A DNA stretch of 62,883 bases, the filler included, from Intoshia linei (taxonomy: Eukaryota; Animalia; Orthonectida), in NCBI GenBank assembly GCA_001642005.1. It is 8 parts of 8 records of this genome, joined end to end, with 100 filler letters (N's around TTAATTAATTAA, not from the genome) between each part and the next. Parts side by side here need not be neighbours in the genome. Positions count along the whole stretch, not along the records: positions 11,625 to 31,007 come from LWCA01000742.1; 7 more parts are not named here. One strand, written 5' to 3'. Every line of letters begins with the position of its first letter. Positions within the stretch are counted from its first letter, which is position 1. Shown here piece by piece: positions 11,624 through 31,100 of the stretch. The notes under the pieces were generated by a model. It saw nothing but the letters and a program-made list of their open reading frames with translations, did not search any database and was not told the DNA's origin. The translations under genes were made by a program, and so were the position numbers.

Positions 11624-11744
11624 NCTTCCACGTATGGGGTGGCACTTTTGTATTTTCGCAAAAAAGTGAAAAAATTCATACCCCTAATGTATATCCTTAT
11701 CCTCGAAATTTAATTTTTTTAAAATAAATTATGAATAATAAAAA

Positions 11745-12650
11745 TTACTAAACTAAGACATTCATCTCTATGTCCTTGTATGCCTCCAAATATAGCTATT
11801 TGTGAATTCATTTTCCAGTGCCAAAGTTTCACGCAACGATCTAAAAAAATCATATTATGAACAAAAAAAATTAAAACTCTTTCTAAAGCCATAATGAAAA
11901 TAATTTCCCAAAATAAAACACGATACAAAACAAAAATAATAATAATATCAAATATCAAAAATTTTACAATTTTTGGGTAATTTGAAATGTATCGTTTAAT
12001 ACAGTGGTTTTCAACCTTTTTGTGTTCGCGACCCCCCTTATAAACAAAAAATTTTCTATATACTCCAAACATCTTATCAATTCACATAAATGAAAATATT
12101 AAAAAAGCATATTCAGTTTTATTTATATTTTATACTGTGTTCAAATTCTCACGACTCCCCTAATAAATTTCGCGGCCCCATGGTTGAAAATCAATGGTTT
12201 AATACCTTTACTAGCTGAAAAAACCAAATTTGGATTATGACAATGAGTCATTAATTCATTAACAGAAGAGCCATGACCAAGCAAAACCTTATGATAATGT
12301 TTGTCTAGTAATTTAATAACTCGTATTATTCCTAGTGAACCAGCCACCAAAATGACTGGAACTTTTTTTGAATCATCATACGTCCAATCACATGTATAAA
12401 AAATCTAAAATTTAAAATTACCCCAAAAAACCAATAAAAATTACATCATTATAATCTGCAAACGAGTAAATAATCCGGGTTGTAAATTTTTCAGAATCTT
12501 CAATTTCATAAACATTAATCTGTAAAAAATTAAAAAATAAAAATTTCAAAACAAAAAAATTTTAAACCTCTTTTCCGCCTACTACGCAAAATACATTACT
12601 AGAATATTTGAAAAATGAAACACCAAATAATTTTCTACTATTGACTTCCT
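11745..12650 (-). CDS. EED: Polycomb protein EED/esc (WD40), 5' portion; 3' part lost in gap, start not resolved
   Basis: FYTCDWTYD..VAGSLGIIRVI..GHGSSVNEL..NPNLVFSASKDRCVKLW..IAIFGGIQGHRDECLS is the EED signature. Confidence 0.92.
12002..12196. mobile_element. hAT (Buster-type) MITE in EED intron
   Basis: TIRs cagtggttttcaacc / ggttgaaaatcaatg; 8-bp TSD gtttaata at 11994-12001 and 12197-12204. Confidence 0.85.
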
Positions 12651-13084
12651 AAAATGAAAAAAAAAAAAACTCAAATAACAATTAAAAATGTAAATTAATA
12701 TTAATAAACATTTAAATATATGTAATCACATTCACATTTCTTCAACTTTTCAAAAGGGCCCAAACCTAACTACAAATATGACAAAAATGCAGTAACTTTT
12801 TTTGATTTTTAAATTTTACAACTTATGAATATTATAAATTTTATAAATAAAAGTTAAAAAATTGGAAATATTGTATGTTATTTTGTGTCGGGTAATTATA
12901 ATAAATATATTAACCCTAAGCCATGATTTAAATGTTAAGTTTAACATTTTGTATAATCAAATAAATTATAATAAAACCTTGATAGTTTCAACATATTCAA
13001 ATTTTAAATTTGATTTCACATTTTTCTTCATAATTGTTATAGCAAACAAAAATTAAGTTTTTTTAATAACGTATTAACGAGTAA

Positions 13085-14009
13085 ATGAACCTGAATATGA
13101 TAATTCTTTATATTATTAGAAAAATATATATATCTTTTCTTTTTGTATATTATCAAACAACAATCATTTTATATTATGTAAATTTGTATTTCAATTTTTT
13201 TTCAAGAAAATTACATGGAAACTTGCCAAATTATGAAAAATTTGAGACCTTTAAACAAACCCCTCAACATGTTGCCATCGTTGTTAAAAATCCTAAAAAA
13301 TTTAAAAATCAAATTGTCAATCTAGTTTGCTTATTAATCAATTTTGGAATTGGCGCCGTCACACTTTATGATAAGAATGGTATGAGGTGAATATTTACTT
13401 TTTAAAGCTTTATTTTTAGGATACATGCTAGAAAATGACCATTATTTCATAGACAAGATTGAAAAAAGTATAAAGTGCCACATTAAAAAAAACAAAATTA
13501 ACAATTATGTTACATGTTTACTATTTGGATTTTCAATTATAATTTTCATTTTTTTAGATAACAAAAATGTGTACATTAATATATACGATTTTCATAGTGT
13601 AGAAATTCAATATGATGAAGTTATTATGTCCAGTAAATTATTGGATTCAAATCAATTGTTACGTCGAATTTTAGGTCGGTTTTTTTGATTATAATGATTA
13701 TTTTTTAGCTTGTATACCTAACTCCAACCCAAATTTAATCTTATTATTTAATAATTGCAATTCTTTGGATGGATTTTTCCCCATCAATATTCATCAATCT
13801 GAAATATTGTAATTTATATTTTAATAGGTTATATAGTTTTTATAACGAATCGTTAGTTTTGTTGATTTGGCTGTAAAGTTACTTTGACTATATTTTATCT
13901 TGAAATTTTTATACCTTTACAGTTTTTTTGTAAAGTGGATAAAATTAAATCGAATTTTGTTTTTGAGGCTTTCTTTAACTTTGCAGCAAATTTGATAATT
14001 TTTTTATAA
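13085..14009 (+). CDS. NUS1: Dehydrodolichyl diphosphate synthase subunit NUS1/Nogo-B receptor
   Basis: N-terminal hydrophobic segment, PQHVAIVV..IVNLVCLLINFGIGAVTLYDKNG and NPNLILLFNNCNSLDGFFPINIHQSEI align to NgBR; last-exon phase ambiguous. Confidence 0.8.
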
Positions 14010-14309
14010 CGTTTTACTCAACTGATAAAAATAGTTTATTTTTAGCATTTTTTTAAATTAATTAGAAAATTAAACAATACAAATAAATTATAAAAAATAT
14101 GAAGATTTTTTTAAAGAATTGATAAAAATACCTAAAAAAAATTTTTATTTTATCTTTGAATCAAATACACCTGCGCGAATCACTGCCAGTATGAATATTT
14201 TGATAAAAACGTGAATACTGAATATGATAATATTTTGGTTGAGTTTATGAGAAATACTGTATTAATAATAATAGTATACAATAAAAACCAATGTTCTGAA
14301 AATGGAATC

Positions 14310-16433
14310 ATGGAGGTTGGCTAGTAAGTTTTTACTATTATGAATAATTTGTGTTTAGTACCAAACAATTTAGTCGATCGCTACATTATTATTTCAAAAA
14401 CCAAAAAACAAAATAAAAAATCCCTTTTTTCAAATATTTTTTTGAAAAACACGATTTTACCAAATCTTATGAGCAACAACTTCCAAAAACCAAAATAAAA
14501 AATCCCTTTTTTTAAATATTTTTTTGAAAAACACGATTTTATCAAATCTTATGAGAAAAAACCTTTAATTTTTTATAAGTGTTTCCGTTTCTAAATTTCA
14601 TGTATTCTTTGTGGTCCAAAAACAATATATTATGAAATGGGGACGTACACTATTTGAATCGAGACTATTTTAATTTATATCAAAAATTAATCTGATTAAG
14701 AAAGAAAGAGCCATATGATTACTGTTTGTAATCGAAAAGTCTTTGTGCCACGTGGAATCTAATTTTGTTGATGTTAACACCGTTATCTTAAAATCTTAAA
14801 ATCATTGTGCTGACTAAAAAGAAATCAATCTTGAGAGAGGAATTCAACAAACTGTTTGAAATTTTTACCTGATTAATAAGATATGATACAACTTATCACA
14901 TAAAACGTTCAAAAATTCAAATGAGTCATCAATTATCAAAAAAACAAGAGAATCGTGTGCTTTGAGTTTAATCTATATTGATGAACAATATATCATTTTT
15001 AACTTTTATTTTTGTCGAGAAAGCTCCAATGTTCCAAAAATGGAACAGTTGATAACTTGGAATTCGGAACTCTTGGGACTGACATTTTTTGTAGGTGCCT
15101 TATTTAGCATATCATGTGACTACATATGTAAAGTAAGAGTATATACAACCACGGCAACCCTGAGCAACGGGATAAAGATACAATAAAATGTATCTACTTG
15201 TTATAAAAATCCAATTTATTTACTATTAATTTTAAAATTTAGTATTTATAATCAAGTTTCCTTGAATTACCTTTCCAGACAAGACGTATTTGAAATTTTT
15301 GTAAAATATTGTAATGTAGAATTTAGAAATGGTACCTAATAAATTATTTTCATTTAAAGTTATCTTTATTAAAAAATTAAAAAGTAGAATATTGAATGCG
15401 TAATTTGAATTTGATAAAAAGAGTATAAAACTGAAAAATTGATTTAATTTCCATTTACAGAGTTATGCCATAGTCAAAAGAAAATACCCGTATTGGGACT
15501 ATCCTATTCCCGATTGGGAGTATAAACAAATGTGGGTATGGCAAAAGGTGCGTAATCGAGTTTACAGAAATGTATTTGAAGTTGACAGAGAGGTTAAATA
15601 TGGCGATACAATGAACGTTTTATTGAATTGCAACGTTGAAGGTAATTGATTGTTTAAAAATATTTTATCTCGAATTAAATTTCCCATTTAGGAATTGGAA
15701 TTGAAGGGGAAGTTGTTTCCGTCGACAAAAAATTGGCTAGGGATTTATTAATACCATCTCAGCAGGCTTTATACACTTCCACCGAAAATTTAGAAAAAAT
15801 GAAAATAAGAATGAGTAAGAAAAAATCTGATGATTCTTTCAAAATATCTGAAAATCTTGCTAAAGTAATTTTATTTTCTATTTCAATTAAATTTTCAAAT
15901 TCTTTAATTTTAACATGACATATAGAGTATAATTATAATATTACGTTTTAGACAATCAGATTGCTCGAGTGCATGACGTTACCTATACCAATGAATGGAA
16001 ATGTAGATTGGATTTTAAACAAATACCACATCCGAATAGCCTTGAGGCGGGCTGTAAAATATTAATTATATCCTTTAATTCATTGTAGGGTGTTATTATA
16101 CCTCTAGATAAAATTTCCGTACCTGACAACATTTCGACAGCCCAAGACGTCAAAATACAAGTTGAAGTAATTAAATCATCATTTTTTATTTTGCAGCGAA
16201 TGTGGTTGCACGAGGCGACCCATGGCGGATTGTCATGACGATGATTCTTAATGTGTTAAATTGTTTTTTTCTAGATAAACCCTAAAAGAATCATTACCAT
16301 CAACTCGAAAATATTTTTGATTGACAAAACTGATAATAAAATGCCAAACGTAGTTTGGAAAGAACTAGATTTTATAGTTGGAATGAAATCTAATATGAAA
16401 ATACCGGGAATATTAAATAACACAAACATTTAA
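14310..16433 (+). CDS. MRPL9: Mitochondrial ribosomal protein bL9m
   Basis: Exons 15461-15641 and 15692-15864 give NRVYRNVFEV..MNVLLNCNVEGIGIEGEVVSVDKKLARDLLIPSQQALYTSTENL (L9 N-domain); last exon 16276-16433; first exon uncertain. Confidence 0.8.
14395..14556. repeat. Two tandem copies of a ~70-80-bp unit; dispersed relatives near 49920-50060 and 59480-59540
   Basis: caaaataaaaaatccctttttt..aaatattttttgaaaaacacgatttta.caaatcttatgag occurs twice. Confidence 0.75.
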
Positions 16434-16451
16434 TACAGATTTATTTATATT

Positions 16452-17910
16452 TTATTTCTTATCTCCCTTCTTATAATTTTTCTTTTTTTCTTTCTGATTG
16501 CTTGGCTTGTTTTCTTTATTTTTATTCTTGTTGTTCTTTTTGGTTTTACTTGGCGCTGTTGACGAGGTTTCGGATTCATCATCGACTGTAGCTTCTTGAT
16601 ATTGTTGATATTCTTGAATAAGATCAAGCATGTTATTATATGCTTCACTAAACTCCAATTCGTCCATCCCTTCTCCAGTGTACCAATGAACAAATGCTCT
16701 TTTACAAAACATGCGATCAAATTGTTTTCCAATTCTATCAAAAGGCTCTTGCATGGCCGTTGAATTGCCAATAAATGTACCACACATACGTAAACCCCTT
16801 GGAGCAATATCGCACACGGCAGAAATGACATTATTGGGAATCCATTCAACAAAACTTTTTGTATTTCTGGTTTGCATTGAAAGAATATTGTCGTCTACTT
16901 CTCTCATTGACATTCGGCCACGATAAATAATGGCAGCAGTAAGATATTTTCCGGAACGGGTATCACAAGCCGTCATCATGTTTTTGTTGTCAAATAATTG
17001 TCTAGTTATTTCTGCTACTCCAATCGTTCGATATCTTTGGCTTCCTCTAGATGTCAATGGAGCAAATCCTGGAGTAAAAAAGTGTAGACGCGGAAATGGA
17101 ATCATATTGACAGACAATTTACGTAAATCTGCATTTAATTGTCCCGGAAAACGAAAACACGTGGTAATGCCCGCCATTGTTGCTGACACGAGATGATTCA
17201 AATCTCCATATGTAGGAGTTTTTAATTTTAATGTTCCGATACAAATGTTGTATAAGGCTTCGTTGTCTATGCAAAATGTCAATTGTGTGTTTTCTATGAG
17301 TTGGTGAATACTGAGAGTTGCATTGTAAGGTTCTACGACAGTGTCGCTCACCTTTGGTGAAGGGATAACTGAGAATGTGCTAATTATTTTGTCTGGATAT
17401 TCATCAGTTATTTTGGATAAAAGAAGAGTTCCCATTCCAGAACCAGTGCCTCCGCCAAGTGAATGCATCAATTGAAAACCTTGTAATAGGTCACATGCAT
17501 CGGCTTCTTTTCTGATTATATCCAAAACACTATCCACTATTTCCGCACCTTCAGTATAATGACCTTTTGCCCAATTATTCCCTGCACCGCTTTGTCCAAA
17601 TACAAAATTATCTGGTCTAAATAACCTTCCGAATGGTACCGACCGTATTGAATCTATTGTACCAGGTTCCAGATCAACTAGTATAGCTCTAGGCACATAT
17701 TTACCAAGTAAACCTTCCGTAAAATATACTTCCAATCTTTCCCCTTGCAAGTAGGATTCTCCTTCGTATGCACCATTTTGGTTTATGCCGTGTTCGTCAC
17801 AGATAATTTCCCAAAACTAGATTCATGTTTTATTTCATATTTTTAGTTCTTACCTTGGCCCCCATTTGATTTCCACATTGCCCAGCTTGCACGCTGATGA
17901 TTTCTCTCAT
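16452..17910 (-). CDS. TUBB: Beta-tubulin, divergent copy A with basic C-terminal tail
   Basis: [19 protein letters not shown], 37-nt intron 17817-17853, then [38 protein letters not shown]. Confidence 0.97.
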
Positions 17911-18639
17911 ATTTTTATTATATTAATAGTTCCAGTGCCATTGTTTAGCCAAATCAATAAACGTGTTCCACTAACACTTTAATTTTATGACCCTTGAATT
18001 TAGATCAAATATTGTGGAACAATATTTGAATGGGGTTAATTTTCATATATGTATCCATTTTGTTATTTTGGCATATAATTTATATTTAATAGTCTTGTTT
18101 TAAGCGTTTATGCGTATCGTTTACATAACTTTGTGTTTTTATTATTTGATATTGGTGAAAAAGTAAACCGCATTTCATTTCAAATTCTAATTTCTGTTTT
18201 CTGATTCTAATTTTCTAATTAAATCTGATTTTATTTTTAAATTGAGATAATTTATTTATAATGAGTACAGTTTGTTGTGTTTTATTAGACTAAATTAATA
18301 TTTTTATTAATTAAAAATGATTATCTCAGTGACATGCTATAGCAGAGCTGAACGTACCAATCTCGAGACCACCCTAAAATCAAACATAAACACAACAATT
18401 TTTTTCTGTGAACGATGCGTAGTGTTATAGCCCTAGCCACCTATCCAAGGCTCTTGGCTTACATTTTAAATATGAATATTGACATTTACAAAAAATATAG
18501 TTCAAGATTATATTTGTATGTTATATGTATGATATATGAGTATTTACAAACTAAGAAAATGTAGCTACAAATGTACGTCTAAAGCCGATGGTTTAAGACC
18601 GTCACCAAACTTTTTTTCACCAACCAGGCAGTACTAAAT

Positions 18640-19740
18640 ATATTAAAAATAAACTAAAGAGTGTTCAATCCTAAAAATTGTCATAAATAGCATAAATTCC
18701 AGAAAAAAATAAAAATTATAAAAACCTATTTTGTCATTTTCAATGTGATAACATATATTCAGTACCAATTTAATAAATACTTAAAAATACCAATTATGTA
18801 TCAATAATGAACTGAATCTTTATAAACATTTCATTTGAATTTTATATTATTGCAAAGGATTGTAATATAAAAATGATATTAACAAAGTTTTTTTAGTTTC
18901 GTTGTTTAGCTTCTTATTTAAATTTGAATGTTTTAAAAATGAAAATTTGAAATTTAAAAATTGCGTAGCAATGAAAAAAATTCCGAAGGAATGAATTATG
19001 TAGATTTTCACAGATATGTCTTTATTGGAAATGTGTAGACGTACAATGCACATTTTTTTTGAAATTGTAGGATCAATATTTACATTTTTGATTTTAATCA
19101 AAATATTTGAAAAATGTTGGTTGATAATATATTAAAAATTATTTTTCACCGGGAGTGCGTAGATTTCTGGGGTTGAAATTTTGTATTTATATCAACTGGA
19201 ATAAAATCTATCAGAATAATTTTTTTTTTTTAATTTTCGGACCGTTAATTATTTCACATTTTTATGTTTTAATGTATGATTATAATGTTGTAACAATGTA
19301 TGCATACTAAAATGCTTTTTTGACCGTTAAATCGTCGCTTATTCGGATTGAAATTTTCTGTATGTTAACAAGATACAACTGTAAAACCTGTAAATTTTTT
19401 GAAATTCTAGGGCTGTTTTCATTAAAAAAAGAAGAGTAATTTTTGGTTTTACCCTGAAGATATAATTTTTTTAAATTTAAATTTATGATAATGTTTATGA
19501 TTTTAAAATCCGGCATCAGCGTATATATTTTTTTAAATTCTCCAACTCGTTTGATTTTCAAAAAAAGGGACAACAGGGGTTTTTGACCCATAAAATTTGA
19601 AATTGATCTTATTATACGCTCTGGAAAAAACTGTAATTGAAATGTGTTCTTTAAAAAATTCTAAGAGTGGTAGTTATTTCAATAAAGTGGAATACACACA
19701 CAAACAAAAATCGCGTATCTTTTTATGTAAGTTAGGATGT
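18640..19740 (-). mobile_element. Non-autonomous Helitron family copy
   Basis: Aligns over ~1 kb with 4885-5750 and the reverse complement of 31108-31620; 5' end reads a|tcctaacttac on the minus strand. Confidence 0.7.
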
Positions 19741-20025
19741 ATCGATTTCTAAAAAACTTAAATATGGAATACCTGTAAACATTTTATATTTATTTACAAG
19801 ATATTTTCATAGTAAATTTGATTAAATTGTACTAGTGAATAGATTCGTTGTTATTTTGAATTTGAATTGTAGGTTTAATTTTTTTGTATATTAGATACCG
19901 ATTGCAATTTGTATATTCATAGTTTTTTATCCTGTATATAAATTTGTATTTAAATCGTACACCGATTATCATAATAGTATTATGGAAAGGGTCATGAACT
20001 GGCAATCTTATTGAATTTGTATATT

Positions 20026-20336
20026 GTACATTAGGGCTATTCCATTTTCATAATTTTTTTTAATATCAAAATGAAATATATAGAAAATGATGGCTGTTTA
20101 ATTTGCTGCAGAATGATAAAAATATTATTTATTTTGGTCTAAAAAACTACTGCCTTTTTATGTTTTCTAACTTTTTTCCTCTCATTTTTTAAGAATTTTT
20201 TCTATCTATTGATATATGTATTCTTCATATCATATAACACTAAATATGTATTAATAAAAAACATTAAAATTAAACTATTTAGCCTTTTTTGTATTGGTGG
20301 GGCATTGGCGGAGCTCGATTATGATCCCTAATGTAC
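20026..20336. mobile_element. MITE bounded by gtacattaggg/ccctaatgtac inverted repeats
   Basis: 11-bp inverted repeat; the same end motif occurs at ~7739, ~11681 and ~47071-47086. Confidence 0.55.
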
Positions 20337-21489
20337 GTAATACGTATTTATTCAAAAATAAATATATTTTCAATCAAATTTCCATTTTGTAAATAAATTG
20401 TGCAAAAAAATAGAAAAACATTTTTTATAAAAAATTTTGAAAAGAAGATGTATAATTTTTATTACCCCATATTGTCATCATTTCCATCTATTGATACATC
20501 GTTATTTTGATTTTTTACGATCATTACTTTGAACCGTGCATTATCTATTTCAGCAAAAAATCGTATGTCACCTAATTATTATTAAATATTTCATTTAATT
20601 GTTAAAAATTTAAACAAATGATTTTATAAGGGTACCATATTTATGTTTTTCAATTTTTTCTGCCCTGAATCGTAGTACGTTAAATAAATAAGGTGCAGTT
20701 GTGTTTTGTTTTCTTGTATAATATTTTTGACAATTTTCAGTTTCTTTCATGTGCAATGTTTCAATTTTCAATAATGATTTTGAAATGTTGATTACATCTT
20801 TTTTATTGAGTTGTCCTCGAGTTATTTTTGTACTTTTTTTGTGTAAACGTTTGTGTATTTTATTTTGTTTTAATCTTTTCATATTATGGAGAATTTTAGT
20901 AAACTTTATCAATTTTTTCAATCTGATTCAATTCAACTGATCGATGAACGATGAATGAAAATATATAATTTATGCCGTTTAGTTTGTGTTTTATGAGTAT
21001 TAAAATAAAATTAATTGTGACAAACTGTGAATATTGTTGATGTTCTTTCATTCAATGCACTACATCATTTGTGAATTTCTTATTATTAAATTGTACAAGT
21101 TACTTGTCAAGTTTCATGTAATGTAATGTTGATTAAATATGGTGATGGGAATGTTGATCTATTGAAGTGCAAAAATATTTTAAAGAAATTCCATCGTATT
21201 CAGTTAGTTTTTTTATTTTATATGAATAATCAGGTTTAAATTTGTTAAATTAGTTTATGGTGTAGCGCTCCACTGGATATGGACGCTCCAAGTTAAATAT
21301 TTTAATTTAATATTAATGATGATTCATTAAGATCAGGGGTGTCAATGATGCGGCTCGCCAACTGAAATACTGAATATATAAAAAAGAAGTCGGAACAAGG
21401 CCTATGGCACACTAAAATATCAATGGGTTAACTAAAACTTAAATATTACAGTTATAATTCTTACTTAGATAACGTAATTGAGTTACACA

Positions 21490-21807
21490 GTATGTCTGTT
21501 ACCATTATTTTTTTAGGAAAGTAATAGGTGTAGAGTTTTTAAAATACCCATTTCTAATACAGTTTTTTGAGGGTCATGATTTATCGCAAATTTAATTTTC
21601 AGAAATTGTGTCCTAGAATTACAAAAAATATACACATCTGATAAAGATTCTAAAATTATCAACATGATAAATTTCAATTTCAAAATCTTATATCTTTACA
21701 GCCGAAACCCCAAATTACCCTTTTTTGTAAATGTAAAAAAGTCATATGTATCTCACTTTCGGCAGATCTAGGTACTGTTTGTACAGAGTAAATAACAGCT
21801 AACCTAG
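21490..21807 (+). mobile_element. Short, internally deleted Helitron
   Basis: 5' part like 37760-37990; ends in the family hairpin and CTAG at 21804-21807. Confidence 0.6.
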
Positions 21808-23415
21808 AGTGTTGATAACAAATGTCAGTAAAATTAAAATTTTTTGGTAAATTTAAAAAAAAGTTGGCATATTCATACAACTGAATAATAGAATATTTTT
21901 ATATACGCGCTAGCTACTACAACCGATGCCTTGACGAAATCAGGAGAGAATTTCCGTTCACTGCATTGTAATTCCTTGGTGTGCTAAAAGAAAATTTCTT
22001 TTGCTATATTGACATGCATGTTATCTGTCAGTTGGATACGGTGTATATCATAAATTCAAAGCGGGAATCTTAGCTCCTACTAGGGTCCACAATTAATTGT
22101 AACGAGAATAACAAGATTATTTATTATATTAATAACATAATTTTTAAAGTCAAAAATGAAATATGGGTCAATTATTGTTTTTATTTTTTTTGTTGCTCCA
22201 TGGTACCTGTATGTAATAATATATAATTTATACATTAATTAATTTAGTATGTAATTTATTTGTGATAGTATCTATAACCACAAATGACCCTTTTATATAA
22301 AAATGAAAAAAGTCCTAGAATTTTATAAAACATAAATTCTGTAATATTTTTTAAAATCATAAGCATTATCATAAATAGCAATTTTAAAAAAGTTACTTTT
22401 CACGATCAAAACCACAAATTACACATTTTTTAAAAAATGAAAAGATTCCTAAAATTTAAAAAAACATTACAGCGTATACATTAATCTCCAGTTAACGCAC
22501 ACAAAAATTTATAATCTGACAAAATGACGTCTTCACGGTCAAAAAAGAACATTAACATTCATTTTTTTATTTATTTGGTAACTATTTTGGAATAATACTT
22601 ATTTTCAAGGACGACTCGATATTGGTAGAATATTTCTAAATCTATCCATTAAAAAAGTTGATAAATGACGATGTTTCGTTTGATTCTCTGAAATGGTGTT
22701 AAATTTTTTTGAGTGTGGTTTAATAAATTAAAGCATTCAATTAATGGGTAAGAGATCCCATTTAAAGGGATTCAGTATAACGTTAATATGTATAATCTAT
22801 TATGGGTTCTGTTGTTTTTGTAGAATCTATTTCTGATTAAAAATTACTCAAAATACACTGCATTATTCGATAAACTAATTAATGCATAATGTAAAAAATA
22901 ATAGACCACTAGATACCCTCTCCGTGAACTGTCCTGAATTGTTCAGTTAAATTCAAGACAAAAGTAATATTATCATGGTATAGAAAAATATATTTTTTGA
23001 AGAGGCATTTTCAAGTTACGTTAAAATCTCCATTGAGAGGTTGCGGTACATTAGGCTCGGTTCTAATGGTTTATTTTAAAATCTATCTACAACATACGGT
23101 AAAATAACTGCAAGGTTCAATATACATGTGGAATGCATGTATGATACTTATAATTCTCATGTGATACAAACATTATTTGTAGAACAATTAATCAATTAAC
23201 TTTAAAGAAACTTAATCCATAATTATCATATTTCACATGAACAATTTAATATATAGAATTAATTATACACAAATTGTACTTTAATGTACTAAAATGTAAC
23301 CTAAAAAAATGCAATATGTGGTATATTGTATTAAATATAGAGCATTTATTTCAGTGCCAGTGGGTCAACATTGATTAATTTCAACAATAGAAATCATTCC
23401 AAAATAAATAAAAAT

Positions 23416-24786
23416 ATGAGAGAAATCATCACTGTACATGCAGGTCAATGCGGAAATCAGATTGGATACAAGGTATATCGTATAGAATATAATTCTAAAA
23501 AGTGTAAATAGTTCTGGGAGAATATTTGCGATGAGCATTGCATAGATTCAGAGGGATCTTATCAAGGAAACTCCAAATTACAATCAGAAAGACTAGATGT
23601 ATACTTTACTGAAGTTGGATCAAAGAAATTTGTCCCTCGATCAGTATTCATAGACTTGGAACCTGGCGTAATTGATCCCATTAGAACTGGACCACTAAGC
23701 CAATTATTTCGACCAGATAATTTCATTTTTGGTCAAAGCGGTGCAGGTAATAATTGGGCAAAAGGTCATTATACTGAAGGTGCTGAATTATCCGACAGTG
23801 TTCTAGATGTAATACGTAAAGAAGCTGAATCCAGCGAAATGCTGCAAGGCTTTCAATTGATGCATTCTTTGGGCGGTGGAACAGGTTCGGGACTGGGTAC
23901 ACTTCTCATATCAAACATTTTTGAAGAATATCCAGATAAAATGATGACTTCTTTTTCGGTAATGCCCTCACCCAAAGTTAGTGAAACAGTTGTTGAGCCA
24001 TACAACGCTACACTTAGTATTAATCAAATAATAGAAAATACTCATTTCACCTTTTGCATTGATAATGAAGCTTTATACAAAATTTGTACTGAAACACTAA
24101 AGCTCAAATCTCCTTCATATTCTGATTTAAATAATCTAGTTTCTTCTACGATATCTGGTGTTACAGCTTGCTTTCGTTTTCCAGGACAACTTAATGCAGA
24201 TTTACGCAAATTGGCAGTCAATATGGTACCCTTTCCACGGTTACATTTTTTTGTCTCTGGGTTTTCTCCATTATTACCCATTACCAGTCAAGGATTCCGA
24301 TCGACAGGCGTATCTCAAATTACTAGCCAATTATTTGATCGAAAGAATATAATGACTGATTGTGACCCTCGTTTAGGTAAATATATGACTGCTGCCTTGA
24401 TTTACAGAGGTCGAGTGTCGATGAAAGAAGTAGATGAGCAAATATTTAATATTCAGAATAACAAAAGTCAAAGTTTTATTGAATGGATACCCAATAATAT
24501 CATTTGTGCTGTTTGTGATGTAGCACCACGTGGAATAGACATGTGTGGGACTTTTATTGGTAATACTACAGCCATTCAAGAACCATTTGCTAGAATTTGT
24601 ACTCAATTTAACACAATGTACAAACGAAAAGCATTTATTCATTGGTATACTGATGAAGGTATGGATGCTGATGAGCTAACTGAAGCGTATAATAATATGC
24701 TAGATCTAATTAATGAATATCAACAGAATCAGGAAAGTTCTGTGGATGATAATGCATCTGTTGACTCTGGAGAATCTCAAGAATAG
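23416..24786 (+). CDS. TUBB: Beta-tubulin, divergent copy B
   Basis: [19 protein letters not shown], 39-nt intron 23473-23511 at the same position as copy A, complete tubulin ORF. Confidence 0.97.
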
Positions 24787-25160
24787 TACCAATCAATATA
24801 AAATACTTGGTCAAATTAAGAAAATAATTTAATTATTGATCTTTTTTAATTAAACATGTTTCAATTAATTTATTGTGTATTTTGTCAAACGGGTAAGTTC
24901 ATAGCTTATGATAAAGTTTACCTCACAGGCTATGAATTATTTTATTGTGAAATTGTGAAAACTTAAATTAAATGTATGTGCCGTTTTTGTAGTTTACCTA
25001 TCATACAGAAAAGTTTTTAAAAATAATAGTTAGAGAACTCTAGAAACATAATCCAGATGAATTTTACCAATATTGTAAAGCATTGTATTAAATATAAAAA
25101 TGATAATAACAAAGTTGTATTACTTTTAGTAATTCGTTGTAGTTTTAATTTAAATTTAAA

Positions 25161-25318
25161 TAAAGTGTCCAGAAAAAATACGTACTATCAATTTTAGTTT
25201 ATTTGGTGTTAAATGTAAAGCCAAAACTACTTATCTATGATGACGAATAAAAATTTTCGGCTTAAAATTTATTCCAAATAAACTAAAAGTGATAGTACGT
25301 ATTTTTCTGGGCACTTTA
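25161..25318. mobile_element. Palindromic Tc1/mariner-type MITE
   Basis: taaagtgtccagaaaaaatacgtactatca.ttttagtttatttgg pairs with ccaaataaactaaaagtgatagtacgtatttttctgggcacttta; TA at both ends. Confidence 0.8.
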
Positions 25319-25597
25319 TAATTTTAAATTTTAAACGGATACTATTTAATGCTCCGACTAATTTAATAGTTTCAGCTTCTAATTTAATATTTATAACGCA
25401 TAATTTAATTAATTTAACATTATTTAAAAAGTACTGTGGTCGTCTAATTTAATGCTTAAGCGTGTAATATAATAATTGTACCATCTAACCTAATATTCGA
25501 AACGTTTGAATAAATTTATAAATTTCTGTGGATCACCACAAATCAACATTTTTCATAAGCCGTTTTTTTATGTATTAGCATTTTTAAGTAAATTTTG

Positions 25598-26785
25598 GAG
25601 TTATTATTATTGCAAAATTTAATTTAATAGTTACAACGTCTAATTAATTCCCCGCTTCTATAATTATCATTAGCATAATTATTAATATTAATTAATTAGA
25701 TAAAATTAAAAATAAAATAACTAAAAACATTTATATTGTTTTATTTGTTTTATTATTTTGTGAATTAACTGTTAATTTATCACTGCTTCAGCAAAGCTTG
25801 ATTAGCCTGAGCTGGTCGTCCCCTCTTTCTTTTGACATTTAATTGGAGAGCATTCGACTCTCGAGGTACAATACACCCATCAAATCTTAATCGTATTGCT
25901 ATACCGATAGAATGTTTACACATGTAATTTTTACCCCAAAAGGGACACGTACACTTCGAAAACTTCCAATTTTAACGATCCAGCGATATTTTCCAAACAA
26001 AATTTTCTCATATTAAAAAAATTTTCAAAACTGTTTTGATTTATTGAATCCACATATTGACTCACTTGGTCCTCGGTCAAGTTAACATCATTTACAATAA
26101 AAATTCAGTTCATAGTTATTTGTCAATAAATTAAAAGTTAGTTTTATAAAAAATAACGTTGTGTTTAAATAAAATAAATGCTACTTCTATTAATTTTGAC
26201 GCTAACATTATAACTATAGACGCTGGTGAAATTAGACACTGTAACTACACAGTGTGTCAATTTATTAGGCAGATCACTAAAATTCATATAATAAACTTTA
26301 GGAATGATGAAAACTTAATTTTTTTTTGTAATTAGGTGGCTTTTAATTGATGTTAATATTATTCATTAAATAAACTGAATTTAATTTGTAAAAAAAACTT
26401 TTTATTCACATTGTTTATTTACTTAAATTACTGTGTAAATTTGTTAGGCAAATTTGAAATCGGACAAAAAAATGACTTAAATAATGACGAAAAAAGTCAA
26501 ATAACAGACTTATTGGCCAGAGGAAAGACAACTCTTCAAATATACAAAGTTCTATAACGCGACCATCGAAAATTAAAAAATGGGCTCATTACCCATCAAA
26601 AAAAAAAATAATAGGTCAAAATATAGAAAAAAAAGGTAGTGACACTGCGAGAATTATCTCGAATTACCTAATTACAAAAAAAATAAGTTTTCATCATTCC
26701 TAGAGTTTATTACATCAATTTTAGTGATCTGCCTAATAAATTGACACACTGTGTATTAAATTATATGTTGCAATAATAATAACTC
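25598..26785 (-). mobile_element. MULE (Mutator-like) element remnant with long imperfect TIRs
   Basis: Minus strand ~25780-25980 encodes SKCTCPFWGKNYMCKHSIGIAIRL (SWIM finger) and KRKRGRP (AT-hook); ends gagttattattattgcaa / ttgcaataataataactc. Confidence 0.75.
26248..26753 (+). mobile_element. Internally deleted Tc1-like element
   Basis: Perfect 37-bp TIR cacagtgtgtcaatttattaggcagatcactaaaatt, TA flanks, HTH relic GQKNDLNNDEKSQITDLLARGKTTLQI..*RDHR. Confidence 0.9.
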
Positions 26786-27199
26786 AATTTAAACTAAATG
26801 CTTTGAAAATGAGAATTTGAGATTGACAAATTGCGAAGGAATCAATTATACATATATTTTCACCCATATTTATTTGTTCCCAAAGTGGGCGATATAATTT
26901 TTAAAAATTTTTTAGGAGGGGTTGAGAAAATATATTGCTAAAAAGATGGCGGTAGGCAAAATGAGTTTAGGAACCCCTGGTGTAGACGTTCAATGGACAT
27001 TTTTTTCACTAATATTTAAAGATACCATCAAATTTTAAAATATCCCTACAAAATTTTGGTCATTGTTCTTGAAGAAACCACAAAAATATTGTCAAAAAAT
27101 AAATATTATGATTAATTAACAAAATCGATGATTATGTCGCTCTAAGATGTATCGGTTTAACAATAAATGGCTCAAACGTATGTCGCTCAACTGAAATAA

Positions 27200-27580
27200 T
27201 TTATAATTCATAACAACACATTTAGAATTTAGTATTTGTGTGAAATAATTAACGGTCCGACAATTAAAAAAAAAAAAGAAAGATTCTGATAAAGCTTATT
27301 CCAGTTAATATAAATACAAAATTTCAACCACAGAAATCTACGCATTCCCGGTGAAAATAATTTTTAATATATTATCAATCAACATTTTTCAAATATTTTG
27401 AAAATAAAAATTGTAAATATTAATCCTACAATTTCAAAAAATAATATGCATTGAACGTCTACACATTTCCAATAAATAAGTATAGGTGGAAATCTATGTA
27501 ATTCATTCCTTCGCAATTTTTCATTCTCAAATACTTATTTTCAAAAAATTTAACGAAATTTATTTTATTTATTTAACGTT
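27200..27580 (+). mobile_element. Helitron family internal fragment
   Basis: Matches 28700-28980 and 39230-39360. Confidence 0.65.
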
Positions 27581-28174
27581 GAATTGGTAGATATAAAATT
27601 TTTCAACGATAGGGTTATTAAAAGATTTTATTAAAAGAATCCTACATTTTTTTGATAATTAATTCTTTCTGATCAAAACAACTAGAAGTATATAAGGTTT
27701 GCTCCATTTTTTATATATAAATGAAATCCTTGCATGTATTGAATGTCCGTTAACGTTGTTTGTTTTGATATTATTCGCAATCATGAAGCACTCGATATCA
27801 CAATCAAAATTACTCTGCAGTTGTTCCAATAACCTCAAAAGAAAACCTTTTCAAACGCAAAATTCAATTACCAAAAAAATTTCGTCATTTTGATATGGTT
27901 TGACGGCGGAAGTGTTATGAAGTGTAGTTCAATGTGTATTGTTATATATATTATCGTAAATACTTTTCAGATTAAATCTAATAATCTTAAAACTATTTTA
28001 TTCAATCATTACAAGGGGAAACTGTTTTTTTAAACAGGTTCATTATTTCTGGGTTTGACAACTAATCCACATATTCCATAAACCTTATAATTGTTGATGC
28101 TCAGTCTTGTGATCTCTGTAATTTTAAAGTATAAAATCGCTCATAAAAATAATAAAGGTCTATTCATAATTTAA

Positions 28175-31100
28175 ATGACACTTGATTGCTTAAATCGAAT
28201 TATATCATGCTCTTTAATTTCCAATACATGTAACAATTATGCAAAGTTGATAAGAATACCACCCAATCGAAAAAATTATTATTTTGAAACTTTATATGGA
28301 AAATTACATTTAAACCCTGTAAACCAGAATTATAGTATTATAAAATCTTCAAAAAAGCATAATTTTCTGATTAAAGATGCAACTTATATTGATACAATAT
28401 CAACAGTTTACGAATTTAATAATGTAGATTTTCAGGTATATTTAAATTATAAATATGGTAAATACACAATGTAATAGTAAGTGATTACTAATCAGTGATT
28501 AGTATGAGAGATATTACATAAGTTATGTAAAATTTTAAAATCGTAAATATTATCATAAATTTAAATTTAAAAAAAATAACAGATGGTACAGTTGTATCCT
28601 GTTAACACACACAAAAAAATTCAATCTGAATAAGTGACATTGTCACTGTCAAAAAAGCACTTTAGTAAAATTTTTTTTTTACGAAATATTTTCTTAAAAC
28701 AATAAATATGAAATAATTAACAATCCGACAATTATTCTGATAGAGCTTATTCCAGTTGATATAAATACAAAAGTTCAACCCCAGAAATCTACGCATTCCC
28801 AGTGAAAAATAATTTTCAATATATTATCAAACCAATATTTTTAAAATAATTCGATTAACTATTAGTAAAATATCCACACATTTCCAATATATAAATATGG
28901 GTGAAAATCTATATAATTCATTCCTTCGATTTTTTTTCATTCTCAAATACTGATTTTCAAAAAATGTAACGAAATTTAATTAAATATTATTATACGTGAT
29001 ATGAAACATTTTGGTATATGACAATTATTGATACAAAATTAATATTTTTTTAATCATCGAGAGAAGATACTGAATATACAGTTTTATTTATAATTTTATT
29101 TTTTATGAAATTTAAGCTATTTTGACAATTTTTAGGATTTACTATTTTGGCTTTATATTTAAGATAAACTCATTATCTTTTATAAATTGAATAAATGGGA
29201 TCACAAAATTGTTTTTAAAATTCTATACAAAAATGCTAACCAAATAAAATTAAGTGGGAATTATTCATTTTTAATTAAGATTTTATTATTGAATTTATTT
29301 TTTTGGTAGAATTAGATAAGTCCGCCCTCATCAGAGCTAGGTGCTGTTTTTAAGTAGTACAAAACAGCCAAGCTAGTGCAATATATAATAAAAACTTTTA
29401 ATTTTAAGTCTAATGTGATTATACTTTTTAGAATTATACAAATATTACTTCTCTTATTGATGTAATTCCTAATAAAAACCAACATTTATTAGAAATAGGA
29501 ACTGGTTCATCGATTTTGACGCATTTGTTGGCTAAATCAGGTAGATTTGTTTTTCATCATTATATAGTTAGTTGGAAAAACTGGACATGTCACTAGCTTG
29601 GAATCTGACACAGCCTTATTTGAAAAATTGCGTATAAAACGAAAAAAATATTTTATAAAATCTGATGACAAATTAACGAACACAGAAATGAATTGTGAGG
29701 TATCTTGTAGAATTTGATAATGTTACATACATGTCTTTATGGTCATTAGAGTAGTGTTTCAAAACTAGGGTTGCCAATTGCGTTATTTCCCCCCTGAGAC
29801 TTCGGTTTGACTTGAGGTTTTCAAATTCAACTCAAGGCTCAGGGTTAAGTTATATTTATCAGGGTAAAAGTTTGCTCTAAAGTATTTATTATGAAATATG
29901 AAATTATTGAATTTTGCAATAAAAATTGTGTGTAAACTGTTATTTTTTAAAAAAGAGACTCCAACGTAAAAGAGGCCACCTAAAAATTTTTTTAAATAAC
30001 AAAAAAAATAACACGCTTCGCTCAAAAATTATGGTTGAGGATAGCTTAATGTTGGTAACGCTATTCACTACCATGTATTCCATCAAAATTAAAAATAATA
30101 TGTGAACGCATAAATCAATTACAATTTTACTTTTATTCTATAGAAGAATATACAAGATAGAATAGATTATATGAATGTTGATTTAGAAGATTTTACACAT
30201 CAAGACTCATATAACCACGTAATTTAATATACAGTTATCTCTTTTTGGTCACCTAAAGTAAAAAATCAAAATTATTGAAAAATATACATTTTCATAAAAA
30301 CTAAATGCAGTCAAAATCTCATTTAACGAATGTTTTGTTTAATGAATATTTTATTTAACGAACATCGAAATTTTATTTTTTATATAAATGCCTAAATGTC
30401 TGGTAAAGGGTGTTTCATTAAGACGGATCGATAAAAACAGCAAATAAAACAATGTTAATGGGTAAATTTTATTGATTTTTTTATTGAATTATGTTATTTG
30501 GCACATGGCAATTATGTGTGAAAAATAATATCGCTCAAATGTTCGCCAAAGCTTTGGCGGCACATCTCCACTCGATGGTCAAAATTTTATATGACATCTC
30601 TGCATAATTGCTCTTCAATCTCACAATATGCCTTATTATCTCATCCTTCAGCTGTTCAATTGTTGTCGGCTTGTTTGCATAGACCTTACTCTTAAGGTAA
30701 CCCAAAGGAAGAAATCCAGAGGCGTCAAATCGCACGATCTTGCTGGTCAACCCACTTCGCTGTATCGAGAGATGATGCGACCTGGGAATTTCTCCTTTAA
30801 TAAAGCCATTGTTGCATTTGCTGTGTGGTATGTGGCGCCGTCCTGTTGGAACAACAAATTCTCGACATCCATAGTATTCAATTTAGGGGAAAAAAAGTTG
30901 GTTATCATGGCACGGTATCTCTCGCCTGTGACAGTAGCATAATTGCCGGCATTATTCTCGAAGAAAAACGGTCCAATTATTCCGCCAGCAAAAAATGCAC
31001 ACCAAACNNNNNNNNNNNNNNNNNNNNNNNNNNNNNNNNNNNNNNNNNNNNTTAATTAATTAANNNNNNNNNNNNNNNNNNNNNNNNNNNNNNNNNNNNN

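Follow-up and report, generated by a model that had tools for sequence, protein, structure and literature searches.

A transcribed beta-tubulin gene of Intoshia linei with a predicted lysine-rich, positively charged C-terminal tail

The DNA stretch that was analysed (the window, 62,883 nucleotides including filler) is composed of eight parts of the genome of the orthonectid Intoshia linei, and all positions given here are window positions. Positions 11625-31007 correspond to contig C503 of the 41.6-Mb assembly, which has 27% G+C. This record carries two beta-tubulin genes, referred to as bA and bB, which are arranged head to head on the same contig, about 5.5 kb apart, and which have the same exon structure; for nine other ORFs of 11625-31007, no Pfam match over the curated cut-offs is found. 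As obtained by translation of the stretch, bA is a two-exon gene on the minus strand (17910-16452). The features of bA, of its convergent neighbour and of bB are listed in Table 1.

Table 1. Positions of the bA gene, its predicted parts and signals, the convergent neighbour gene and the sister copy bB
Feature	Position	Strand	Description	Evidence
bA exon 1	17854-17910	-	19 codons, MREI at start	sequence, RNA contigs
bA intron	17817-17853	-	37 nt, GT..AG, after codon 19	joint 17816/17854 in RNA contigs of two runs
bA exon 2 (whole)	16452-17816	-	454 codons and TAA	
bA tubulin body in exon 2	16590-17816	-	GTPase domain, intermediate domain, H11-H12; to ...QEYQQYQEA	Pfam, PDB, RNA contigs
bA proximal tail	16548-16589	-	14 residues, Ser/Thr-rich, net -4	RNA contigs of all three runs, no gaps
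bA distal tail	16455-16547	-	31 residues, Lys/Asn-rich, net +12	sequence
Two adjacent AATAAA in the Lys-rich coding stretch of bA	16515-16526	-	possible internal poly(A) signals	sequence
bA annotated stop TAA	16452-16454	-	overlapped by AATAAA 16456-16451	sequence
Second AATAAA, beyond the bA stop	16445-16440	-		sequence
Convergent neighbour gene, last exon	16275-16433	+	stop 16431-16433, 18 nt from the bA stop	
bB, divergent beta-tubulin	23416-24786	+	exon 1 23416-23472, 39-nt intron after codon 19, exon 2 23512-24786	

The homology searches with bA were done with exon 2 alone, and the deposited 473-aa protein OAF67116.1 stands for the joined model of exons 1 and 2. Exon 2 matches the Pfam families PF00091 Tubulin (E 5.3e-54, 183.8 bits) and PF03953 Tubulin_C (E 6.4e-36) as well as the solved beta-tubulin chains of the PDB (E 4.6e-224). 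At 100% identity, exon 2 corresponds to an I. linei beta-tubulin already in the databases (OAF67116.1 / A0A177AYR0), and the bA gene model, including its lysine-rich end, is thus public under that accession. The top PDB and database matches are all of the beta class, at 72-77% identity; the bA body is 72-75% identical to ordinary beta-tubulins, and the alpha genes of Intoshia are 35-46% identical to bA. When compared with canonical metazoan beta-tubulin (TUBB4B, PDB entry 9eok_B; Intoshia C2621/C1991), the fold and the domain order are the same, and the shared features include the co-translational autoregulation motif MREI at the opening of exon 1 (the junction of exons 1 and 2 being confirmed in RNA contigs), the GGGTGSG nucleotide-binding signature, which is not among the altered invariant positions of bA, the M-loop, the residues E410, D417 and E421, and the intron after codon 19. 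The EGEF axoneme motif, used as a test for axonemal-type tubulins, is not present in the tails of bA and bB, and the canonical Intoshia copy has EGEFDEE. Likewise, the tail of bA is not an acidic, Glu-rich E-hook, its net charge being +8. An acidic tail is a typical feature and not a structural requirement, and bA stays in the beta-tubulin family: it is a beta-tubulin by every structural criterion tested, with only the acidic tail and the axoneme motif missing.

In the preliminary description, the beta-tubulin ORF was reported to end in a polycationic tail, with 15 lysines in the last 31 residues. This is borne out, with the coordinates and the strand being correct as well. The same 31 residues include 7 asparagines and 3 acidic residues (net +12), and the whole 45-residue tail, which follows after ...QEYQQYQEA, carries a net charge of +8, where canonical beta-tubulin has about -10, and is about 25 residues longer than the canonical metazoan tail. 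The comparison of tail charges that had been proposed sets bA clearly apart, as the intact tails among the best 120 database homologues are all acidic, with net charges ranging from -7 to -16. In a scan of 1.84 billion cluster representatives, of which the best 150 matches were examined for tail charge, the net-positive tails among these 150 belong to models that are plainly frameshifted or fused (such as a rabbit UniRef entry) and to one model from Ptychodera flava. A region-restricted search for a homologous tail (residues 395-454 against 5.8 billion proteins) finds only the bA protein itself. Comparison of the last 120 residues of bA with transcript-derived fragments yields no Intoshia fragment and no other Lys-rich tail, and in the open-access full-text literature no description was found of a polybasic tubulin tail, or of bA itself.

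The DNA and the peptide of the tail are also unique in the Intoshia genome, as found by searching the assembly. A repeat or mobile origin of the tail DNA was considered and is ruled out by this single occurrence. In a 144-kb sample of the genome, with 70 stop-to-stop ORFs of at least 100 aa, there is no other 31-aa window with more than 11 lysines; such a lysine density is not ordinary for the AT-rich Intoshia proteome, as judged from this small sample. The tail DNA consists of 68% A and has 25% G+C, as compared with 38.5% G+C in the body. Of the two alternative frames of the tail, one is open and encodes a basic peptide, and the other reaches a stop at the VDDE codons. An open frame through this DNA is unsurprising, and is no sign of coding by itself, because the DNA is A-rich and because a second frame is open too.

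It had also been stated that the tubulin body is intact. This is correct in the sense that the body is full length and has both Pfam domains, but the H11-H12 surface is remodelled. When 270 positions that are constant in 17 canonical beta-tubulins are used as the invariance reference, 38 of these are altered in bA, mainly in H11-H12, and 55 in bB, as compared with 2 in the canonical Intoshia protein. The changes in bA (for example K379D, E383K, A387R, R390C, E412Y, S413N, N416L and S420Q) cluster at residues 379-420, which we take, from established tubulin structures, to be helices H11-H12, the outer ridge touched by motors and MAPs. E410, D417, E421 and the nucleotide-binding motifs are unchanged. 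Changes at 11 invariant positions are identical in bA and bB; the derived features shared by the two proteins include E412Y, S413N, N416L and others, together with VDD as the opening residues of the tail. That H11-H12 is remodelled in a coordinated way in both paralogues suggests that selection has acted on the microtubule's outer surface, and not mere decay.

The two copies are 68% identical, with bB having the more divergent body and ending after a tail of 16 residues, which is weakly acidic and Ser/Asp-rich, has no basic residue and is without a Glu run; its stop falls about where the lysine run of bA starts. In a maximum-likelihood tree, calculated for the region of the last exon of the canonical gene, bA and bB form a sister pair (SH-aLRT 95), of which the long branch attaches to the metazoan beta-tubulins, and the canonical Intoshia beta-tubulin is among the shortest branches of the same tree. 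The substitution rates between bA and bB are dN 0.21 and dS ~2 (saturated), with dN/dS being ~0.1, and therefore both bodies have been under purifying selection since the duplication.

The tail of the canonical Intoshia beta-tubulin is EEEGEFDEEEEEEEA. The canonical beta copies are cut by contig ends, on C1991 and C2621, and C2621 (1-3781) opens with the last codons of another canonical copy, which suggests a tandem array of near-identical genes, unresolved by the assembly. A further, multi-intron and divergent beta-tubulin with an acidic, Asp-rich tail is present on C2345. The canonical alpha gene (C168) encodes a tail ending in ...EDEEEGEEY, and a divergent alpha-tubulin, also with an acidic tail, is found on C3039; the latter is a candidate partner of the divergent beta copies. 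At least nine loci of the TTL family (tubulin tyrosine ligase-like) score above the Pfam cut-off (on C2061, C431, C3103, C2634, C429, C1142, C2124, C543 and C3151), so that tail-modifying enzymes are available for the canonical tails; the reduced genome of Intoshia keeps a sizeable set of these enzymes.

Assembled contigs from three sequencing runs of one study (X1-X3, of unrecorded type) were aligned to 16250-18000. These runs are RNA-derived, because 17817-17853 is precisely missing from the contigs (with CT..AC on the plus strand, which is GT..AG on the minus strand); contigs of the neighbour gene from the same runs likewise jump an intron, at 16168-16274. Record 2 of X1 and record 5 of X2 span bA exon 1 and reach into the 5' UTR, to 17994. 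The bA contigs are colinear with the genome, without gaps, down to 16548, and there are only two differences, at 16869 and 17052, which are both third-position and synonymous when checked by hand against the frame. The expression of bA, its splicing as modelled and its frame up to the first lysine codon are thereby confirmed, and the concern that the gene might be silent is answered by contigs from all three runs. A donor suspected near 16549 is unused in the assembled transcripts, since the match of the contigs continues through its GT (16549-16548) in all three runs. If one were to postulate a 56-nt intron between this donor and a CAG ending at ~16494, the C-terminus would still be basic. 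Similarly, an indel restoring an acidic tail, which had been envisaged, is not seen in the RNA contigs up to 16548, and none could have this effect because neither of the two other frames encodes an acidic tail.

The RNA check that the preliminary description had asked for, across 16452-16600, is achieved in part: the gapless match extends to 16548, but 16471-16547 is masked as a repeat in the read alignment (with the warning that 'reads seem cut there'), and the direct RNA view stops before the Lys-rich codons. Contigs of X1, X2 and X3 carry 54, 48 and 88 more letters, respectively, 3' of 16548, which are not displayed; if colinear, these contigs end at ~16494, ~16500 and ~16460. The ends of X1 and X2 would then be 15-21 nt downstream of the internal AATAAA pair, and these ends could reflect an internal poly(A) site, internal priming by oligo-dT on the A-rich run or a break in the assembly. 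The presence of the Lys-rich codons in the bA mRNA is only indirectly supported in this way, and we infer that the complete Lys-rich tail is translated. A 263-nt RNA contig (record 8 of run X3) is ~91% similar to the genome over 69 nt (17556-17624) and then diverges; this contig presumably derives from a different tubulin gene, either a paralogue or one of the host.

It is plausible but unproven that the tail arose from a former acidic tail, by a frameshift or by bypass of its stop, after which the ribosome would have read on through the A-rich 3' region of bA. In such an AT-rich genome, a shift of the frame by one base would convert Glu codons (GAA) into Lys codons (AAG), and GAA repeats read in this way give AAG-AAx pairs. 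The codon usage of the tail is of interest here: AAA and AAG occur in a ratio of 13:1 in the bA body and of 8:7 in the tail (Fisher p 0.035), and with an intergenic ratio of ~7:1, the probability of 7 AAG among 15 lysine codons is ~0.001. This excess of AAG could equally fit descent from GAA repeats or avoidance of poly(A) tracks in a translated sequence. The DNA of the canonical Intoshia E-hook, when read in the +1 frame, encodes a Lys/Arg-rich peptide that runs beyond the normal stop, and therefore one frameshift would give both the charge reversal and the extra length. The internal AATAAA pair at 16526-16515 provides TAA stops in another frame, which fits a former gene end at this point. 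However, the frameshift origin is unproven because no DNA homology between bA and bB is detectable after the VDD codons, where the local alignment is no better than those of shuffled sequences, and the lack of a Glu run in the sister copy bB counts against this origin.

The acidic tubulin tail is among the most constant features of eukaryotic microtubules and is the platform of the 'tubulin code', which comprises glutamylation, glycylation, motor landing, severing and MAP binding; the kinesin-3 K-loop, severing enzymes and basic MAPs act on such acidic tails. The reading that is favoured here, with a rough probability of 0.55, is that bA is a real, transcribed and lineage-specific specialised isotype of beta-tubulin, in which the E-hook is replaced by a polylysine-like tail. 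The genes bA and bB are a fast-evolving head-to-head pair that exists alongside the canonical beta-tubulins of Intoshia. The bA protein keeps its GTP-binding core and its lateral and longitudinal contacts, and because of this conserved core it should still be able to form heterodimers with alpha-tubulin and to polymerise. Its Glu-rich E-hook would have been exchanged for a short Ser/Thr-rich stub and a 31-residue polylysine-like extension, which, if made as annotated, would not be a substrate for polyglutamylation or polyglycylation and would bind or neutralise the adjacent acidic alpha and beta tails (about -10 each). Microtubules with an altered surface charge would be the result, and these may be expected to capture K-loop motors and basic MAPs more weakly, to resist spastin and katanin, to have a tendency to self-bundle and to associate laterally. 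Charge neutralisation, bundling and exclusion of glutamylation are functions of the tail that we infer only. E-hook interactions are electrostatic, as described for the interplay of K-loop and E-hook (PMC12933465). The polybasic segments of kinesin-3 K-loops and basic MAPs are Lys-rich, disordered and drawn electrostatically to acidic tubulin tails, as the bA tail could be, but these elements belong to the partner protein and not to tubulin, and they have no sequence relation to the bA tail.

A more far-reaching version of this proposal, which is doubtful, is that the tail is a natural 'K-hook', in which a polyanion was turned into a polycation by a frameshift of Glu codons and was then kept by selection, with a role in cross-linking, in neutralising charge or in directing import into the nucleus. 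If this were true, there would be a class of microtubules that is invisible to the glutamylation and glycylation code, and other animals, such as Ptychodera flava, may independently have followed this one-step route. The protein concerned (XP_070536937.1, 'tubulin beta-4B chain-like') is a predicted, divergent sequence of this hemichordate with 46% identity, in which GEGE is followed by a run of Arg and Lys with a net charge of +15, and this tail has the look of an out-of-frame Glu run. Unlike bA, it has a degenerate H11 region; it is not an orthologue, and it could be a copy in decay or a model with a frameshift.

Several other explanations of the Lys-rich end of bA have to be weighed. It is possible, though not favoured, that bA is a functional paralogue in which the Lys/Asn stretch is a neutral or slightly deleterious read-through that followed the loss of a stop in an AT-rich genome, and which would be tolerated because this isotype no longer depends on its tail. 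This would agree with the tail DNA resembling A-rich non-coding sequence (its G+C content is close to the 27% of the genome and below that of the body), with the second open frame, with bB stopping about where the lysine run begins and with the uniqueness of the tail among the 5.8 billion proteins. However, no other long ORF of the 144-kb sample has a comparable lysine density, and AAG is enriched over the non-coding expectation (P ~0.001). The concerted changes of the outer surface of the body also argue against neutrality, as they suggest specialisation at the level of the surface. That the bA protein is a decaying pseudogene, or that its gene model reflects an assembly error, is by comparison largely excluded and is given almost no weight: the long branch and the many changes at otherwise invariant sites might be read in this way, but down to 16548 the sequence of the RNA contigs is that of the genome, save at the two synonymous sites, and dN/dS is ~0.1 in a gene with an intact frame and conserved core motifs, of which the transcript is spliced and expressed.

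The annotated tail might also not be made in full, as a result of cleavage and polyadenylation after 16526-16515, by which a shorter mRNA lacking an in-frame stop would be formed, or of a wrongly modelled 3' end, and the product would then be truncated, unstable or ending in lysines encoded by the poly(A). The two canonical hexamers within the coding stretch are in agreement with such an event, in particular as they are stops in another frame, as if marking the ancestral end of the gene, and the ends of X1 and X2, if colinear at ~16494 and ~16500, are at the expected cleavage distance. This explanation is nevertheless unlikely, as the X3 contig, with its 88 letters past 16548, would reach ~16460, 6 nt from the annotated stop, and both internal priming and assembly breaks are well known from A-rich sequence. 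Moreover, non-stop mRNAs are normally degraded, and the depth of the bA contigs is at least that of the neighbour gene (a weak measure); even the shortened product would be basic. Finally, by analogy with the stage- or spindle-specific isotypes of Physarum plasmodia and Tetrahymena nuclei, the basic tail may be a targeting signal, such as an NLS, taking bA into the nuclei of the multinucleate plasmodium stage. The lysine clusters, being 10-14 residues apart, resemble bipartite NLS patterns, nuclear spindles of Tetrahymena use beta-like tubulins without PTM motifs and plasmodial Physarum builds intranuclear spindles only (PMC3382179, PMC9294176), but any Lys-rich stretch fits NLS patterns, and this possibility is considered very unlikely.

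With bA as a transcribed, specialised isotype, an expressed beta-tubulin of opposite tail charge would be a natural experiment on the purpose of tail charge, and it would be a hint that this radically simplified parasite has a specialised microtubule array. It would also point to a simple evolutionary route, in which the AT-richness of a genome allows a frameshift of one base to change a run of Glu into a run of Lys and to carry translation past the stop. Specialists would not expect a natural tubulin tail to have its charge reversed, and the matter can be tested directly. If, instead, the tail is untranslated or neutral, bA calls for caution about 3' ends that are modelled through A-rich sequence. 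Non-canonical beta-tubulins are known from Tetrahymena, in which BLT1 and BLT4, without the tail motifs for glutamylation and glycylation, occur in particular microtubule arrays (PMC3382179, PMC9294176). These are protist genes of independent origin, for which the loss of PTM motifs, and not a polybasic tail, is described (PMC3382179, PMC9294176), and, as bA and bB group together and attach to metazoan beta-tubulins, their resemblance to bA would be a functional analogy only.

The surroundings of bA are compact on its 3' side. RNA contigs of the convergent neighbour gene end at 16409-16440, and, as the stops of the two genes are 18 nt apart and the contigs extend to 16440, the 3' UTR of each gene must overlap the coding end of the other. 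This overlap shows that the genome is compact. Elsewhere on the same record, the intergenic A/T-rich DNA at 14401-14562 contains a tandem duplication of an 82-bp unit (2.0 copies, 93% match).
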